This document shows, in pieces, positions 10,017-59,374 of a stretch of DNA of 64,000 nt (positions are counted from its first letter, which is position 1; each line of letters begins with the position of its first letter). Where the stretch lies: sequence record MH221129.1, one strand, 5' to 3'. The notes beneath the pieces were generated by a model. It was not told the DNA's origin and searched no databases. It saw only the letters and a program-made list of their open reading frames with translations. A program made the position numbers and the translations under genes.

Positions 10017-10092
10017 TGGCGACTCAGACAGGACTCGAACCTGTGACATATGGATTAACAGTCCACCGTTCTACCAACTGAACTACAGAGTC
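10017..10092 (-). tRNA. tRNA-Asn (GTT)
   Basis: Full cloverleaf, anticodon arm GTGGA-CT-GTT-AA-TCCAT, encoded CCA. Confidence 0.95.
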
Positions 10093-10100
10093 TTAAAGAG

Positions 10101-10176
10101 CGAGCATGTGACAGGATTCGAACCTGCGAGATATCCGATTATGAGTCGGGCGTTAATTCCTCTAACTTCACTGCTC
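10101..10176 (-). tRNA. Degenerate tRNA-Met/Ile2-like (CAT)
   Basis: Good anticodon arm CCCGA-CT-CAT-AA-TCGGA and TTCGAAT T-loop. Acceptor stem is bulged, A at position 8, no CCA. Confidence 0.6.
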
Positions 10177-10177
10177 T

Positions 10178-10284
10178 TGCTTTGACCGGTCTCGAACCGG
10201 CGACCTTCCTCCGCAAGGGTGCTCCACTTTCGTGGATACATTCCCTTTTCTGGAGGGTGCTCTACCTACCTGAGCTACAAAGCC
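10178..10284 (-). tRNA. tRNA-like gene with a 41-nt structured insert replacing the anticodon loop
   Basis: Acceptor GCTTTG/CAAAGC, D-arm GCTC/GAGC, variable loop AGGTC, T-arm GCCGG-TTCGAGA-CCGGT; anticodon loop expanded. Confidence 0.7.
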
Positions 10285-10421
10285 ATTGTACCGTCAACAC
10301 TTGCTGTAGAAGTACCCATCCACAGCAGGGATGTGGGGGAACGCCCAGGCTTCCGCCCAGTCAAGTGAGGTACGAATCTTTCACTTCTGTCATCACTGAT
10401 GGTGACAACGCTCCCATTGTC
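10285..10421 (-). ncRNA. Candidate structured ncRNA between tRNA-Gln and the tRNA-like element
   Basis: Several hairpins, e.g. GACAATG/CGTTGTC and TGCTGTGGA/TCTACAGCA. Confidence 0.35.
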
Positions 10422-10496
10422 TGGCAGTGGCACCTGGATTCGAACCAGGGCATACCGGTATCAAAAACCGGGGCCTTACCGCTTGGCTATACCACT
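10422..10496 (-). tRNA. tRNA-Gln (TTG)
   Basis: Cloverleaf close to enterobacterial tRNA-Gln, CCGGT-TT-TTG-AT-ACCGG, CCA. Confidence 0.95.
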
Positions 10497-10499
10497 AAA

Positions 10500-10576
10500 T
10501 GGTTGTCTCGAGTGGACTTGAACCACCGACCTCCCGCTTATCAGGCGAGCGCTCTAACCAACTGAGCTACGAGACA
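10500..10576 (-). tRNA. tRNA-Ile (GAT)
   Basis: Cloverleaf, CTCGC-CT-GAT-AA-GCGGG, CCA. Confidence 0.95.
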
Positions 10577-10704
10577 TCTGAAAACTGGACCCGATTATTC
10601 CAATGCTGGTTATTCGCATTCGGGTCAACATACGACAATAGGGACTTTAACCCGTCTTCCTCATCCTCGGCTTATCGTGTTCCCGGAGATGTCTTCACAT
10701 AGAG

Positions 10705-10781
10705 TGGCAGGACTGACGGGACTCGAACCCGCGACCTCCGCCGTGACAGGGCGGCGTGAACTCCAACTTCACCACAGTCCT
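10705..10781 (-). tRNA. tRNA-Asp (GTC)
   Basis: Cloverleaf, CCGCC-CT-GTC-AC-GGCGG, CCA. Confidence 0.95.
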
Positions 10782-10785
10782 ACAA

Positions 10786-10866
10786 TGGGTGACACCCCTC
10801 CGAATTGCACGGAGTTCTCAAGGCTGCACAGGCTGAACGATTTACGTACCGCCACTCGGCTTGCCA
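10786..10866 (-). tRNA. Highly degenerate tRNA-like element (possibly His, GTG)
   Basis: T-like arm CTCCG-TGCAATT-CGGAG, loop CT-GTG-CA, ends in CCA; acceptor and anticodon stems imperfect. Confidence 0.35.
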
Positions 10867-10912
10867 GTCTTCATCCGCTGCTCATTGGCTGCAGGAGACA
10901 AGTGTCGTTGTT

Positions 10913-10987
10913 TGGTAGAGCGTACGGGATTTGAACCCGTGTGACAGCCTTGAAAGGGCTGTATCCTTACCGCTAGATGAACGCTCC
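10913..10987 (-). tRNA. tRNA-Glu (TTC)
   Basis: Cloverleaf, CAGCC-CT-TTC-AA-GGCTG, CCA. Confidence 0.95.
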
Positions 10988-10993
10988 GGTAAA

Positions 10994-11078
10994 TGGTGGC
11001 AGGTGAAGGACTCGAACCTACGAAGCCCGAAGGCCACAGATTTACAGTCTGCTCTCGTTGCCGCTTGAGTAACCTGCC
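10994..11078 (-). tRNA. tRNA-Tyr (GTA)
   Basis: Class II cloverleaf with long variable arm, GCAGA-CT-GTA-AA-TCTGT, CCA. Confidence 0.95.
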
Positions 11079-11299: not shown

Positions 11300-11441
11300 G
11301 TGCCGGTGCATCCCGGCTTGTGTACGGCGCACTCAGCTCCCTCGGGCTTATCTACAAGTACACGCTGCCAGGTGCACCGACATATACCACAATAACCTCG
11401 TTAGAAGTCACTCTGGTATTGCTCGTTGCATACTACTGTGG
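11300..11441 (-). ncRNA. Candidate structured RNA (multibranch unit plus long interrupted rod)
   Basis: Nested stems TCGGTGCA/TGCACCGG, CCTGGC/GCCGGG, GTGTAC/GTACAC; second unit closed by CCACAGTA/TATTGTGG. Confidence 0.45.
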
Positions 11442-11511
11442 TTTCACGTAAACGATTTCGCATCGGAATCCGAGTGCATATTAATTATACTAATTAACCC
11501 AAATTAATTTT

Positions 11512-12444: not shown

Positions 12445-12520
12445 TGGCAGGGGAGACAGGGCTTGAACCTGCAACATTCGGTTTTGGAGACCGACGCTCT
12501 ACCAGTTGAACTACTCCCCC
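12445..12520 (-). tRNA. tRNA-Trp (CCA)
   Basis: Cloverleaf, TCGGT-CT-CCA-AA-ACCGA, CCA end. Confidence 0.95.
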
Positions 12521-12529
12521 AGAAATCTT

Positions 12530-13030
12530 TTACGTTTCAGGAACTATCACGATCTCCTGAACAGGTCCGCCGGTATTAACATCGAAGTGCATTGCAATCC
12601 GTACAGCTTCCGCTGCGCTAACACCTGCTGCCATTGCACCCATCGCGTATTCGGAACCACTTCCTACCGCAATCGGTGGTTGAACTTTTGCAAGCCAGGG
12701 AATCTCTTCGTCGCTGTACTGTCCGCCGGCATACACTTCGCCTGACTCGGTGATAACGATGTATTTCAGAGATTCACCTTTGATGAAACGGGTTGTTGAG
12801 TTTAGGCCGCTATAACCGACCATGACGCTTCGCAAAGCACCATGCACAATCTCCGTAGCACCCAAGCTACCCGCAACGCCGAAAGCAATCGCACGCTTAC
12901 CATCCACAACCCATTGCTCGTTGGACTCTGGGCGATAAATCTTTTTCGTGTTACTGTCCAGGCGTAGTGTGCCTGCAGTGAGTTGGGAATCCGATGCTAA
13001 CGTATTCCCGTCGAATGCTATCGTGGTCAT
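12530..13030 (-). CDS. HslV/proteasome-beta-like Ntn (Thr) peptidase
   Basis: N-terminal MTTIA..ASDSQ nucleophile motif and AVGSGSEYAMGAM signature. Confidence 0.75.
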   Translation of the reverse strand: MTTIAFDGNTLASDSQLTAGTLRLDSNTKKIYRPESNEQWVVDGKRAIAFGVAGSLGATEIVHGALRSVMVGYSGLNSTTRFIKGESLKYIVITESGEVYAGGQYSDEEIPWLAKVQPPIAVGSGSEYAMGAMAAGVSAAEAVRIAMHFDVNTGGPVQEIVIVPET

Positions 13031-13076
13031 GGTAATTCTCCGTTTGGTTTAACATACCCAACGGTTAAGCTGTAAA

Positions 13077-13466
13077 TTATCCGGCGCTCTGTGTTTCCAG
13101 GGTGGCTTTGTTGGCACGATACGCCAACTCGAGAAGCTTGCGGTTCCCCGTTTGAATAAAACCACCCACTGGGGTTGTCGACCGGATGTAACGCTGAATC
13201 GCCAACGTCAGTAATCCGGGAATGGCGTCCACAGCTGTGCACTCCGGCAGGATACGGTTCGCTTCGCAAAGCAGGTAACCGTACTGCGGTTTGAGTTTAA
13301 TCGCACAGGCAATCGCCGAGAGCGAAGGCATGGTCGAGAATTCGATGGCATCGGCGTGAACCTCCAGCCAAGACAACACCCCAGTTGGGTCCTGCAAGTG
13401 CGAGCCTTCGAGAAGACAGCGCAAGTCATCAACGGTCTTTTCCCCGATGAGTGTGAATTCTGACAT
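13077..13466 (-). CDS. Hypothetical protein (129 aa, MSEFTLIGEK...)
   Basis: Start reassigned to ATG 13466 (SD GGAG). Confidence 0.75.
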   Translation of the reverse strand: MSEFTLIGEKTVDDLRCLLEGSHLQDPTGVLSWLEVHADAIEFSTMPSLSAIACAIKLKPQYGYLLCEANRILPECTAVDAIPGLLTLAIQRYIRSTTPVGGFIQTGNRKLLELAYRANKATLETQSAG

Positions 13467-13493
13467 AGCAATCACTCCATGTTTGAATTTGGT

Positions 13494-14044
13494 TACAGCC
13501 AGATACCGACGTTTCACAACGGGGGTATCCACCCCTCTCGTCTTTCCGAGCCGCCAAGATTTTGACCACCTCCAGTTGGAGATCATCCCCCAAACCTGCG
13601 GTTCTACACGCAGGCCGCTATCGACGCAACGCCGAATCCTGGGTTTTGGCCAGGCCCCAGGGCGGTATATTCGGAACTACCGGAGGTAAGTTCAACGGCG
13701 TTTACCGAACTCCAGTCCCCTGGGGTTGCCACGGTCAACTCGGTTTTGTCATGGTTGCCGCCTACTGGCCGCGTGCCGACGTATCACGACGTCGACGACA
13801 CCGAGTACCTGAATGGGTGGTGTGCGATGGTTTCCCCGCCAACGCTCACCGGTTCTGTTTCCACGGCGAAGTTTCTCAGAACATACTAAACAAAAACCAA
13901 GTGTTAGATTGAGTTTTCGTTTTGTCGAAGGCACCCACGGCAGGTACTCTCGAAAAAACGTCCTGAGTAATCCACCCAGGACTGGAGCCCTGACTAGCAG
14001 GGTTTAAAAGCTGTTGTCCTTGGCGCGGTCAATCAGCTATTCGC
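13494..14044 (-). ncRNA. Candidate ~550-nt large ornate ncRNA
   Basis: 5'/3' ends complementary, 12-bp, 9-bp and 7-bp long-range helices, many hairpins, no credible ORF. Confidence 0.6.
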
Positions 14045-14339
14045 ATATAACAACAAACTCGTGTAAAAAAATTTCCGGCCAGGAGGAGCATGTCCAACCT
14101 CGAGGCCGGATAGCCACACAGCAGAGCGTCCCTCGGCGGGGACTTTGTCGAATCACTACAGGGAGTTTGTCGTGAGAATAAAAATCCGCCCTGGGGTCGG
14201 TGTGTTGCTTCGGGTCGACTTGTCAGAGTCTCGACGCCCAGGGAGGCGACCACCAACGCTACGGGTTTGTCTTGTGGGCATCGGAGTGTGGTCTAAGCAC
14301 ACTAAACCCCTGCCACGTAAAAAAACCGCAAACCGAATC

Positions 14340-14760
14340 CGGGTAGCCCCGGATCGAGATCAGGATCTCTTAATAAGGATCACGCGTTTAAGTAATACTA
14401 CTACGTAGTAGTATAATTATAATATTATTAATTATATCCCTACGGGATATATATTTAATTATATTATTTATATTCTTTTAAAAGATCCTGTAGGAAACGC
14501 GTGTGCACGCGGTAAAGGAGGGATTGAAAATCCCGCTAAGATCAGGATCGATCCTCTACCCCGCCGAAAGGCGGGTAAGTCTCTGTTTTAAAAAGAATTT
14601 TTGAGAATTAGGTTTATTAATCCCCTGGAGGGGAATTAACCAGGAAGTTTAACCCCAAAATAACCCTCGTAAGTAACCGACAGTGTGTGTCGGTTACAGA
14701 ACGATCCAGTTTAAATTTCCGAGATCGCACGAAGTGCTACCCAACGTTTGATCGTCCGGC
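14340..14760. other. Candidate replication origin / DNA control region
   Basis: ~80-bp AT-rich core, perfect 20-bp palindrome, 11 GATC sites, flanking 11-bp direct repeats, many inverted repeats. Confidence 0.45.
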
Positions 14761-15115
14761 GGTCGGCGAAGCGGCACGACGGTGGTGCTCAAGGCTCCTC
14801 AGACGCTCCACACGGGGTTAAACTGGGGTGAGGAACCCACATGTACCGGGTCTGACCTTGACGTGCTCAGAATGGATTCTGTGACGTTTTTAATGATTGG
14901 TCAAAAAATAAACAACCCGCACCCCTCGAGAGTGATTGTCACCCGCCCCAGCAAAAATAAATTCCCAAATTCCCATCCTAACACCCTCAAATTCTCACGT
15001 AACCAACCCTCTACGATTATCAAACTCAAAAAATGAGCTACCCTACTAACGATGACTTACATCGTCTCCTGATGCTTTCTACAGGCTTTAAAGCTGTTGG
15101 TTAAAAAGTGTACAA

Positions 15116-15149
15116 AAAACAAAAAAAGAAAGGGTGACCGAAGTCACCC
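15116..15149 (-). terminator. Intrinsic terminator
   Basis: GGGTGAC-UUCG-GTCACCC hairpin plus long U-tract. Confidence 0.8.
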
Positions 15150-15163
15150 CGATAGCATTTTAG

Positions 15164-15781
15164 TTAACGCTTCGTCATAGAGCTGACAAGATACAGTTGA
15201 CCTACGTGTCGATAGCCTAGCTTGACAATAGCTGCCCGTTGCTTGTCAGTTAGCGGGATTGTTGACCTCAGTGAAATATGAGCCAGGTCTTCCTGCTCAG
15301 CCTGCGGATAGCCACGTTCAATGACGACTGGGTCAGGGAAGTAAGCAGGTTTTTCATGGTCACAATAGACTACACCAGCGACTAAATGTCGAGTTTCTGC
15401 TAGTCGCTCTGATGACACCTCCCAAACATTGCTGATGAACGCGCTATCTGGTAATGTGATGCCGGGTGGAACGAGATATTCGTAAAAACCGTCTTTGTCA
15501 AGTTTGGTTACCCGACGTACGATGGTGTTAAACTCGTCTTGTGTTAAACGACCCTCCAGTAATACATAGCGACGATTCTGAAACTCGCGGCCACCTGAAA
15601 AGTGTTCGTAGATGTGAATCGGGTTGTTGCCGTTCTTGTCTTTGGTTTCGATGATGTAAATATCGTCAGGATGATAACGAATTAACTTCACCAGGCGTTC
15701 TTCAAATTGATTCCAGTTTTCAGCTTTTTCAACTTTGTACTGGCGAATCATTTCAACAGCGCCTTTAGCAAATCGTAACAT
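15164..15781 (-). CDS. Hypothetical protein (205 aa)
   Basis: SD AAGGAG, long ORF. Confidence 0.8.
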   Translation of the reverse strand: MLRFAKGAVEMIRQYKVEKAENWNQFEERLVKLIRYHPDDIYIIETKDKNGNNPIHIYEHFSGGREFQNRRYVLLEGRLTQDEFNTIVRRVTKLDKDGFYEYLVPPGITLPDSAFISNVWEVSSERLAETRHLVAGVVYCDHEKPAYFPDPVVIERGYPQAEQEDLAHISLRSTIPLTDKQRAAIVKLGYRHVGQLYLVSSMTKR

Positions 15782-16377: not shown

Positions 16378-17511
16378 TTACGTTTCCACTGACTGTGAAA
16401 TTGAATTAGCACCGTAATGAAGTCCGATCTCTCGCAGACTCATGCCCGTCGCATAAAAAATCTGATCACTAATACAGGTGACCAGTGCATCAGGGTCAAT
16501 CGCATCTATTGCGAGGTCGGATTCAAAATGCCATTTCTCGGTGACTCCACCCTTTTCGAAGGTCGCGGCATACATACCGGGTTGTACTCCCTGCCGGAAA
16601 GAAAAGAGTTTAGCGTCGGACTCGTTGTCCTGGCCATAAATTTCCCCGTCTTCACGTTTAATCGCTGCGCGTTTACACCGCGTCACCGTAAGTAAAGCGC
16701 GGCTGGCGGATGCTTGCTGTTTAAACGGATAGGGGCCATGGTATGACGGGACAGTTGAGTCGCCCATAGCGTCAAGGGCAATGCTCCGATAAACTACCGG
16801 AGACTTAAAGTTGCACAGTCGATTCCCTTCGGTATACATCGTGTACTCCACTTTGACGTGAGTACCGATAAGGTCTGCAGGACTGACTCCGTAATGAGCC
16901 AATTGCGCCTGCACGCGGCGAGACAGCATCGATGCCAGGAACGTTTGGTTTGTCGGTGTGCGCAAGACATAACCGTACTCTGTGCAGTCGATAATCGTCG
17001 CATCCATACGACGGACTGGCTCCAGCCGATAAAAGACACCGCCAGTTTCAATAAGAAATTGACTGATGCCGGCATCGCGGGATTTCTGTTTGATAGCTTC
17101 AAACACATCGCCCGCTCGCATCAAGGCCGGTTCAATTGCGTTGACCTGGAACGGTAGTGGCTTAGTAGGCAGCTGTCCCATAGTCGTGACCGTAATTGAA
17201 CGCAGTCTTGCATCATCTTCGGTGGGCTCGTTCGATAACCAATGCGTTAACCACCGAGATAAGTTTTGAGGAATGGTCGCTCTGGAATACAGAATCACCG
17301 TTCCCATGATACCCGCGTCCGCTAACATACGCGCGAGTATCGTATTCATTGAATCATACTTTCCATTTCGCAGAATGGGCATTCCACTAATCTGGACCAT
17401 CTCGCAGATGACGCCGTGAGGCAGCACCCACATTTTGACCTGCTGGTCGGGACCGACGGTTCCGTCGCGTAAGTGTTGTTGCCAGAGTTGCTTACGTTCG
17501 TAGTTCATCAT
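16378..17511 (-). CDS. Hypothetical protein, degenerate ATP-dependent DNA ligase-like fold (377 aa)
   Basis: Spacing of LPHG..., LRNGK, IMGT, RLEP..MDATII and OB-like GTHVKVEY...T.G resembles ligase motifs. ORF is solid; function is an inference. Confidence 0.55.
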   Translation of the reverse strand: MMNYERKQLWQQHLRDGTVGPDQQVKMWVLPHGVICEMVQISGMPILRNGKYDSMNTILARMLADAGIMGTVILYSRATIPQNLSRWLTHWLSNEPTEDDARLRSITVTTMGQLPTKPLPFQVNAIEPALMRAGDVFEAIKQKSRDAGISQFLIETGGVFYRLEPVRRMDATIIDCTEYGYVLRTPTNQTFLASMLSRRVQAQLAHYGVSPADLIGTHVKVEYTMYTEGNRLCNFKSPVVYRSIALDAMGDSTVPSYHGPYPFKQQASASRALLTVTRCKRAAIKREDGEIYGQDNESDAKLFSFRQGVQPGMYAATFEKGGVTEKWHFESDLAIDAIDPDALVTCISDQIFYATGMSLREIGLHYGANSISQSVET

Positions 17512-54947: not shown

Positions 54948-55427
54948 TTAATTAATCAGGTGAATCACAACGTCTGGCGTCACTACATCGACCAGACTGC
55001 GATAGATTTTATCGTAACTGAACTTGTTGAAGAAGAAACCCGCTTCGTCGACAATAACCAAACCGAATTTCTCGTAGCCGGATATTCCCGCACCGGTTGC
55101 TCTTTTCCAACCTTCCGGTAAGTAGCTACAATGTACAGTCAGCCAACCGATTCCAGCCGCTTTTTCATGGAACTTCTCCACCACTTCGTTTCGCAACGAT
55201 TCATTGTGAACTAAGTAGAGCACGCTACCATGGAACTTTGCTGACATATCAACGGCGTGTGTTGTAACACCTTTCTGGCGTCCTGCACCGTAGCGAATAG
55301 TACGAAATTCGCTCAGTGCAATGTGCGGCATAAAGCCACAATTGCGCGCTTCTTCGGAGTCCAGTTCGATAAGACCCTTAGACAGTTCTTTTACTACGGC
55401 ACGGTAATCAATCCGAGTTATAGACAT
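54948..55427 (-). CDS. Single-domain P-loop-like protein with degenerate Walker A
   Basis: GRQKGVTT and LVIVDEA motifs. Confidence 0.6.
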   Translation of the reverse strand: MSITRIDYRAVVKELSKGLIELDSEEARNCGFMPHIALSEFRTIRYGAGRQKGVTTHAVDMSAKFHGSVLYLVHNESLRNEVVEKFHEKAAGIGWLTVHCSYLPEGWKRATGAGISGYEKFGLVIVDEAGFFFNKFSYDKIYRSLVDVVTPDVVIHLIN

Positions 55428-59325: not shown

Positions 59326-59374
59326 TATAATTATCCTTGCGGGTGGTTTACATACGTACACCCGCGTTTGTAAT

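Follow-up and report, generated by a model that had tools for sequence, protein, structure and literature searches.

What occupies a 1.7-kb gap between two protein genes of a Salmonella jumbo phage? The window analysed here (64,000 nt of record MH221129.1) belongs to phage SPAsTU (genus Seoulvirus, 250.7 kb), a relative of SPN3US, with 100% identity over a 1.8-kb query around the element. Between a 205-amino-acid gene (15164-15781) and a 129-amino-acid gene (13077-13466), positions 13467-15163 contain neither a long open reading frame (ORF) on the coding (minus) strand nor an annotated feature in the record. The last third of this gap is filled by an element for which a first-pass annotation, made from the letters alone, had proposed a discrete, highly structured non-coding RNA of ~550 nt on the minus strand. 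That proposal holds, on the grounds of covariation, the lack of a coding signal and a promoter-like motif at fixed spacing. The element is an RNA gene on the minus strand, whose product is conserved, non-coding, structured and divided into several domains (probability about 0.9). This RNA represents a previously undescribed family of about 410-600 nt that is confined to SPN3US-like jumbo phages. Compensatory changes maintain at least ten helices of its fold, which comprises a variable 5' half and a 3' half with a near-invariant 27-nt core and a GNRA-capped terminal hairpin. Full-text literature searches found no description of this RNA locus.

Homologues of the stretch were found by blastn in 63 phage records, with identities of ~76% in the SPN3US group, 79% in Erwinia phage pEa_SNUABM_29 and ~72% in Erskinevirus (phiEaH2, Stratton, Asesino); Machinavirus and Wellingtonvirus matched in shorter blocks. 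The homologue search among jumbo phages combined with covariation analysis, which the first-pass annotation had proposed as a check, thus yielded relatives with covarying helices in four genera (Seoulvirus, Erskinevirus, Machinavirus, Wellingtonvirus), as well as in related metagenomic contigs. The homologues measure 411-598 nt from the predicted start to an invariant GCUG, and each genome carries one copy as judged by a covariance model of the 3' domain. No other part of the gap is as well conserved as the element, in which pairwise identities go down to about 45-50% (alignment of 14, then 18-20 sequences). Exact scans for the core returned 11 viral contigs (all of jumbo-phage size where complete) and six metagenome contigs, with no match among 185,579 bacterial and archaeal species represented by one genome each; a degenerate core pattern returned the same 11 viral contigs and no remoter relatives. 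Additional loci were located using a neighbouring 377-amino-acid protein as a handle, and four of these (L037, L038, L039 and L041) carry the RNA. The RNA is absent from the syntenic loci of Derbicusvirus (EarlPhillipIV, CR5, Phobos) and of a contig from a Shewanella assembly, where the gene order is kept and the covariance model gave no match. At the syntenic position of a Logan contig (L040:8700-9130), the same promoter motif precedes a diverged, structured sequence that shares ACCUUGGCAG and the H7-H8 domain (see below) and lacks the core present in every other member, which hints that the family is wider than core-based searches reveal. In ~60 deposited genomes the locus is blank or carries spurious small ORFs. 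In several of the SPFM records (LR535901-LR535917; SPFM1, 5-10, 12, 14, 15, 20) the match to the element is broken up into short segments of 85-91% identity, whereas sister isolates align in a single piece over ~95% of the query; this suggests indel-rich assemblies at the locus, not true divergence.

A missed protein gene was considered and rejected. The longest frames free of stops lie at different positions in different phages, most indels between close relatives disrupt the frame (6 of 6, 13 of 13 and 14 of 17), and the variable columns show no three-base periodicity (p = 0.5). The small ORFs annotated at the locus in Huxley (gp278), phiEaH2 and Asesino are not conserved. ORFs have invaded the RNA gene itself on at least three occasions. 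In Kwan (L014:1868-2490), Wellington and L017, an HNH endonuclease cassette of ~620 nt separates H12 from GGUGAUC. In the Machinavirus-like contig L039 a related HNH cassette (L039:10150-10790) takes the place of the GAAUUCGG-H11-H12 segment, and in L041 an unrelated 121-amino-acid ORF sits in the linker just past H7 (L041:9320-9695). The breakpoints lie at domain borders, which would fit an RNA of modular build that might even be functional as two separate parts. At its 5' end, the HNH cassette has a sequence (GGUYGAUCCCCGAARAGACG) similar to GGUGAUCC...CGGAAAGACG of the RNA itself, and in Kwan this end gave a sub-threshold Rfam match to int-alpA (31 bits; threshold 35.8).

The 551-nt stretch folds better than dinucleotide shuffles on both strands (z = -3.7 for the minus and -3.0 for the plus strand), which by itself proves little. 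Individual helices were therefore judged on 18-20 homologues from the four genera. RNAalifold predicted 40 pairs in the 3' domain, 16 of them with compensatory change, and the covariance model of this domain found a single match in the window (13490-13749, minus strand, 221 bits) and exactly one copy per phage. In the model-based alignment 98.9% of the cells pair, compared with 89.2% in a partner-shuffled control (0 of 500 shuffles reached the observed value) and 31-53% when the partner was slid by 1-3 columns; double changes occur in 17 of the 40 pairs, and the covariation score was 0.333 versus 0.173. These pairing figures somewhat flatter the model, since the structure guided the alignment and the sequences share ancestry, although the slid-partner control and independent swap tests agree with them. 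Many of the conserved pairs are G-U and would be A-C mismatches if the opposite strand were read; the minus strand is therefore the one that encodes the RNA, as it does the flanking genes.

All complementary words listed in the first-pass annotation are present on the minus strand where it had placed them, and several of them belong to the conserved helices of the 3' domain (Table 1). Its CCUGGG/CCCAGG is part of H8, in which five of six pairs show compensatory change. H8 is flanked by the four-pair H7 (YGGY/RCCR), with double changes from U-A to C-G, one of them within a single clade (pEa9), and from C-G to U-A. The domain closed by these helices holds a hairpin with the conserved loop GAACUUACC (13685-13693), the stem below which covaries in Machinavirus. 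For AACGCCG/CGGCGUU, which had been paired with each other, the compensatory changes favour the local hairpin H10 instead: CGGCG/CGUCG is replaced by CGGCU/GGCCG in the Huxley group (GC to UG and GU to GC). Wellingtonvirus lacks the GAAUUCGG box next to it. The proposed CCUGCG/CGCAGG is H11 and is borne out by compensatory changes, with nine distinct 5' arms in the 11 representatives compared (CCCAGCG/CGCUGGG, GUACACGG/CCGUGUAC and similar stems elsewhere). Swapping the arms of H11 between phages lowered the stability from -11.5 (cognate) to -3.9 kcal/mol (chimeric), and none of 100 chimeras matched the cognate mean. Past H12, the conserved GGUGRUC may pair with the UUACC loop as a pseudoknot, a pairing for which there is no covariation to draw on; GUUC/GAAC is a second proposed tertiary contact.

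The 27-nt part of the core, CUUGGCGGCUCGGAAAGACGAGAGGGG (CUUGG...GGGG), is invariant in 14 phages apart from single-base loop changes, such as an A-to-G change (GGGAAGAC) in pEa29, phiEaH2, Asesino and L018; exceptions are a loop insertion of 1 nt or 2 nt (SaP7, L037) and one G-to-C (L038). The terminal hairpin that follows varies freely in sequence and shows compensatory changes in seven of seven consecutive pairs, with tetraloop variants GUGA, GCGA and GAGA; its cognate arms gave -17.9 and chimeric arms -12.4 kcal/mol. The pairing of the 5' end with the 3' end, named in the heading of the first-pass annotation, was not upheld: swapping gave no sign of covariation (-9.9 kcal/mol for cognate and -10.5 for chimeric ends), and the proposed 3' partner lies within this strongly covarying local hairpin. 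A further helix that RNAalifold predicted between ACCG and the core GCGG ('helix 1', CCGU with GCGG) is invariant, clashes with P-c (GGU/ACC) and with the covarying fourth pair of H7, and is broken in L038. It is doubtful and probably spurious.

The hairpins of the 5' half were located through the invariant words that flank them, as their variable stems could not be aligned by MAFFT. Across the whole RNA, near-invariant short words are UUUUUCGAG, CCUAACAC, UUCAGGU, ACCGYGGYAG, GAACUUACC, GAAUUCGGCGUUGCGUCGA, GGUGRUC and the terminal GCUG. Hairpin B had been noted as an alternative hairpin competing with a 12-bp helix. The hairpin is real, but a mere alternative it is not: 11 different 5' arms were found, every one of which pairs with its partner (cognate -15.3 versus chimeric -9.7 kcal/mol). 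Conversely, the 12-bp helix is perfect in SPAsTU only, partial in two other Seoulvirus lineages and absent elsewhere. With its U-run, hairpin B keeps the form of an intrinsic terminator (GC-rich hairpin, U-run) and was flagged by a terminator scan. We read it as part of the fold and not as a stop signal, because the U-run pairs with a downstream A-run in a covarying manner, is degenerate (UUUCU) in L041, and is followed by ~450 nt of conserved structure. In the resulting hairpin P-a, CGUUUU/AAAACG is replaced by UGCUUUUU/AAAAAGCA in phiEaH2 and by CGCUUU/AAAGCG in Caitlin, the inner stem GUACC/GGUGC covaries, and UUUUUCGAG in this region is invariant. The Caitlin group has the hairpin-U5CGAG module twice.

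Further downstream, a segment of ~65 nt (13816-13882) is restricted to Seoulvirus and Erskinevirus, so that GUUCUG/CAGAAC, which has compensatory support, is a helix of these two genera only. In P-c, GGU-ACUCGG (13809-13801) pairs with CCGAGU-UG-ACC (13743-13733); 11 distinct arm pairs were found, all pairing (e.g. ACUCGG/CCGAGU, AUCGGC/GCCGGU, UCGGUC/GACCGG and CUUGUC/GACAAG), and cognate arms gave -12.9 versus -8.5 kcal/mol for chimeras. The word pair CGACGU/ACGUCG is present as described and falls within a lineage-specific variable insert. A 9-bp helix, GAGUACCUG/CAGGUACUC, proposed to stack on UGGGUG/CACCCA, is specific to Seoulvirus, and the other genera have a covarying local hairpin instead. 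The boundaries of the first-pass annotation are essentially right and its fold is about half right: roughly half of its helices are conserved, and the paired ends and the 12-bp and 9-bp helices are not.

Table 1. Positions in the window of the predicted RNA, its structural elements and the neighbouring signals.
Feature	Position	Strand	Remarks
Whole predicted RNA	13496..14044	-	549 nt in SPAsTU, from the G of TATG to the invariant GCUG past the terminal hairpin
AT-rich block (31% GC) with palindromes and GATC cluster	14358..14511	-	Context; outside the RNA, on the upstream side of its gene
Terminator-like hairpin (CCGGCC...GGCCGG) + T7	14065..14109	-	Just upstream of the RNA gene
Promoter-like motif TTAC-N15-TATG	14044..14066	-	Predicted start G 14044
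Hairpin A (CCCUG/CAGGG)	13988..14002	-	Seoulvirus and Erskinevirus only; Erskinevirus has CUGC/GCAG there
Hairpin B (GUCCUGGGU/ACUCAGGAC) + U-run	13953..13982	-	Conserved in every genus
Irregular long hairpin P-a	13918..13959	-	U-run + CGAG pair with UCGAC + A-run
Hairpin P-b	13885..13925	-	Conserved apical loop (C)ARYCUAACAC (13901-13910), then conserved UUUAGUAUGUUC (13879-13890)
Two lineage-specific hairpins	13816..13882	-	First is GUUCUG/CAGAAC; Seoulvirus and Erskinevirus only, deleted in Machinavirus and Wellingtonvirus
UUCAGGU, then variable domain closed by P-c	13733..13813	-	UUCAGGU conserved
Domain closed by H7/H8	13647..13731	-	H7 UGGC 13731-13728 / GCCA 13650-13647; H8 ACCCCAG 13726-13720 / CUGGGGC 13660-13654
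GAAUUCGG box and hairpin H10 (CGGCG-UUG-CGUCG)	13621..13639	-	Conserved
Hairpin H11 (CCUGCG/CGCAGG), conserved loop UGUAGAAC	13595..13614	-	Covariation, swap test
Small hairpin H12 (CUCC/GGAG) and conserved GGUGRUC	13564..13581	-	Alignments
Core AUCUUGGCGGCUCGGAAAGACGAGAGGGG	13532..13560	-	Holds invariant hairpin CUCG-GAAAGA-CGAG
Terminal hairpin (UGGAUACC...GGUAUCUG)	13496..13531	-	Internal loop, GNRA tetraloop, then invariant GCUG; covariation, swap test
Ribosome-binding site (GGAG) and ATG of next gene	13464..13478	-	129 amino acids, function unassigned; context, outside the RNA

Does the RNA belong to a known family? The 4227 models of Rfam 15 include GOLLD, ROOL, OLE, HEARO, RNase P, tmRNA, 6S, group I and II introns, T-box, riboswitches and self-cleaving ribozymes. 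At gathering thresholds they returned only transfer RNAs (tRNAs) in the window. With E up to 10, positions 13000-15400 gave four chance-level matches (best E = 0.37), and nine homologous loci gave no recurrent match inside the element. As far as covariance models can tell, the RNA is thus outside all of these families. The search had been named as a check in the first-pass annotation, and it agrees with that annotation on the absence of RNase P, tmRNA and group II signatures. Other identities were tried and rejected as well. ARAGORN found no tRNA- or tmRNA-like element in the gap. Group I introns interrupt a gene and have a conserved P3-P9 core with a guanosine site in P7; this RNA is intergenic, interrupts no gene and matches no intron model. 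Group II introns start with GUGYG and end with a sequence-conserved 34-nt domain V and a domain VI with a bulged A. Here the predicted 5' ends are GCGAA, GCUCG or GCACG, no model matches, and the terminal hairpin is about the right size for domain V but free to vary in sequence. The words CGGAAAGAC, ACGAGAGG, GUACCGCGG and CGCUGUGAAG all resemble one stretch of 23S ribosomal RNA (rRNA). Mimicry of the peptidyl-transferase centre or sarcin-ricin loop (e.g. CGGAAAGAC, ACGAGAGG) was rejected, as the resemblance is neither collinear nor significant (best blastn-short E = 0.14, no match with nhmmer profiles, clustering of shared k-mers p = 0.08-0.35 versus shuffles). Complementarity to the RNA elsewhere in the window was at chance level (21 11-mers versus 17.5 expected), and no internal repeats or iterons of note were seen within the element.

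The ends of the RNA were assigned from flanking motifs. The TATG at 14047-14044, pointed out in the first-pass annotation as a phiKZ late-promoter word, is real and forms part of the longer motif TTAC-N15-TATG. The window contains this motif five times, where 1.43 occurrences are expected (2 of 100 shuffles attain five), always on the coding strand (11429-11451, 13053-13075, 14044-14066, 55245-55267 and 59351-59373, minus), and it is often trailed by (T)TAAAC; the copy at 13053-13075 precedes a gene for an HslV-like peptidase. In all Seoulvirus, Erskinevirus and Machinavirus loci it immediately precedes the RNA with exactly this spacing, which supports a start at 14044. The phiKZ late promoter is T-3 A-2 T-1 G+1 (PMC7598289), and by likeness to it the RNA would start at G 14044. 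Wellingtonvirus-like contigs have GGTATTAC(N0-1)TATG in place of the motif. Sigma-70 promoters were predicted at chance level only. The terminator-like hairpin just upstream probably insulates the gene from upstream transcription, and together with the fixed-spacing motif in three of the four genera it points to a transcription unit of its own. TTAC-N15-TATG is a candidate phage-polymerase promoter class for SPN3US-like phages; we know of no description of the middle and late promoters of phages of this type. Between the AT-rich block and the RNA gene, 14065-14330 (minus strand) comprises two ~120-nt units (about 14316-14190 and 14185-14065), each with a hairpin and U-run at its end and the first preceded by a TTTTTTTAC word. 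Both are conserved within Seoulvirus only and could be small RNAs or stacked terminators.

Downstream of the RNA, the next gene of SPAsTU begins 30 nt past its end and the ribosome-binding site 20 nt past it. The gene that follows varies among phages: in some it is directly a 125-130-amino-acid gene, in others a new copy of the promoter motif stands directly after the RNA, before an HslV-like gene. Further on, an island of tRNA genes lies on the same strand, with tRNA-Trp (12445-12520) 1 kb from the RNA and six further tRNAs (10017-11078, ARAGORN) at 2.4-3.5 kb. Rfam reports an eighth, marginal tRNA at 10103-10174 (minus strand, 31.3 bits, threshold 29; not reported by ARAGORN), which may be a degenerate or unusual member of the island. 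Apart from the HslV-like peptidase and the inserted HNH endonucleases, the neighbouring proteins have no informative Pfam, PHROG or PDB match. The 377-amino-acid neighbour (16378-17511, minus strand) is called 'putative DNA ligase' in the records of MET_P1_082_240 and Proteus phage 7, a label that looks unsupported, as no Pfam, PHROG-function or PDB sequence match was obtained. Upstream, the AT-rich block holds the perfect palindromes ATATATCCC-GTA-GGGATATA, TACTACTACGTAGTAGTA and CGCGTG-CA-CACGCG, a cluster of five GATC sites and the word TATTAC. All four RNA-carrying genera have the block (also at L014:1040-1165 and L033:5300-5560), at a distance of 300-450 nt from the RNA in SPAsTU and immediately before it in the Huxley group. 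In Derbicusvirus the corresponding place also holds an AT-rich, iteron-like block. The block upstream of the RNA gene may be an origin of replication or a region of early promoters.

The closest counterparts in kind are GOLLD (RF01998) and ROOL (RF03087), large, ornate non-coding RNAs of unexplained function encoded by phages and prophages, often beside tRNA islands. ROOL and GOLLD examples of 659 nt and >800 nt have been described, the latter family with a conserved 3' and a variable 5' part (bioRxiv 10.1101/2024.12.08.627333). The SPAsTU RNA shares with them the large multi-helix fold, the phage genome as its place and the tRNA genes nearby, and with GOLLD the conserved 3' and variable 5' domains. 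It differs in being somewhat smaller (411-598 nt), in giving no match to their models even at E up to 10, and in residing in lytic jumbo phages of Enterobacterales, whereas GOLLD and ROOL come from phages and prophages of Firmicutes and from rumen and lake samples. The comparison with ROOL, GOLLD and OLE made in the first-pass annotation is reasonable for size and context, but as an analogy, not as membership of a family. That the RNA is a stable, trans-acting molecule of the ROOL/GOLLD kind has, in our estimate, slightly less than an even chance. It would be transcribed by the phage's own polymerase from TTAC-N15-TATG, starting at G 14044; the polymerase would read through hairpin B and its U-run, and the RNA would accumulate as a stable species with its 3' end protected by the terminal hairpin. 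It would then act in trans, with the invariant core and the conserved loops (CCUAACAC, GAACUUACC, UGUAGAAC) either binding a partner conserved to the same degree or assembling into a higher-order particle of RNA or of RNA and protein, as has been suggested for ROOL and GOLLD. Several points weigh against a trans-acting RNA. No terminator follows the RNA in SPAsTU, so that a discrete RNA needs processing or the RNA may be only the 5' part of a longer mRNA; the conserved terminator-like hairpin 60-90 nt past the predicted start could stop most transcripts; and start, end, stability and action in trans are all matters of inference. Because Derbicusvirus relatives and the Shewanella-associated contig do without it, the RNA is dispensable for this phage lifestyle, and because ORFs are inserted in three lineages, an uninterrupted RNA is not always required. 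The resemblance to ROOL and GOLLD, too, is one of context and size only. A bolder and rather doubtful version holds that this is a new RNA class of nucleus-forming jumbo phages, made by the phage multisubunit RNA polymerase, and either a ribozyme with CUUGGCGGCUCGGAAAGACGAGAGGGG as active site or an RNA-only or RNA-protein particle that would handle the phage tRNAs or the host ribosome in the course of infection.

The lack of a terminator over the 20-30 nt before the next ribosome-binding site, seen in SPAsTU, pEa29 and most Machinavirus, also fits a cis-acting leader, a long structured 5' untranslated region of the downstream operon (129-amino-acid gene, HslV-like gene, tRNAs) that would govern translation or read-through, be it through attenuation at the hairpin and U-run, through processive antitermination or otherwise. 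The orientation common to the RNA and the tRNA island and the conserved terminator-like hairpin with U5 inside the RNA are likewise what riboswitches, T-boxes, attenuators and put-type antiterminators would lead one to expect. We regard a leader as unlikely, though, since the terminator-like element precedes the large conserved domain, the reverse of the order in riboswitches, and its U-run is engaged in the covarying pairing and is degenerate in L041. The downstream gene is not conserved, with a fresh promoter-like motif and a different next gene in SaP7, Erskinevirus, Caitlin, ChrisDB, L015, L030 and Wellingtonvirus; no Rfam model matches; and at 410-600 nt with an invariant 3' core the RNA is several times larger than known leaders. 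Extreme conservation of a core within a multi-helix fold is typical of catalytic RNAs, and the near-invariant 27 nt could be the active site of a ribozyme that processes itself, and so sets its own ends, or acts on other RNAs, such as precursors of the phage tRNAs encoded downstream. Some processing would be needed for a discrete RNA without a 3' terminator, and catalysis would overlap with, not replace, the structured-RNA reading. It is distinctly unlikely all the same: no Rfam 15 ribozyme matched in ten genomes at E up to 10, and there is no splice-site or exon context.

RNA II at ColE1 and middle-mode transcripts at T4 origins act in replication as primer or R-loop RNAs, and they share with the SPAsTU RNA the structured transcript of a few hundred nucleotides beside a conserved AT-rich block. 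A primer or R-loop former for phage DNA replication would be in keeping with the proximity of that block in all genera and, more loosely, with a length akin to that of RNA II and a G-rich 3' part of the core. Yet the block lies upstream of this RNA and not at its 3' end, Derbicusvirus keeps such a block without the RNA, which shows the two to be separable, and no local skew switch is visible. Covariation up to the very 3' end and the GNRA tetraloop speak for a folded RNA and not a DNA hybrid, and we consider this role very unlikely. Hardly credible is a degenerating or selfish element without function for the phage, the remnant of a mobile intron-like or homing-endonuclease-associated RNA. HNH and other ORFs inserted in three lineages and the absence from related genera agree with it. 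With the group I and II self-splicing introns of phages the RNA has in common a similar size range, several GNRA-type loops, modular peripheral domains that vary by lineage and homing-endonuclease ORFs in some copies. But the RNA lies between genes, has no GUGYG start and no conserved domain-V-like sequence (its 33-nt terminal hairpin varies freely), and no group I or II model matches. The near-invariant core and the compensatory changes across four genera at 45-60% overall identity bespeak purifying selection. Homing endonucleases, moreover, typically invade conserved functional genes.

To our knowledge, the classes of bacterial or phage RNAs that are both large (>400 nt) and intricately folded are very few. 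Those with a known function are mostly catalytic or part of core machinery, and ROOL, GOLLD and OLE are still unexplained. The RNA described here is a new family of this rare kind of molecule. TTAC-N15-TATG offers a candidate promoter definition for SPN3US-type phages. The RNA itself adds a further, unrelated large-RNA class. Its occurrence in lytic jumbo phages of Salmonella, E. coli and Erwinia that are open to genetic work provides an experimental handle on what such RNAs do for a virus.

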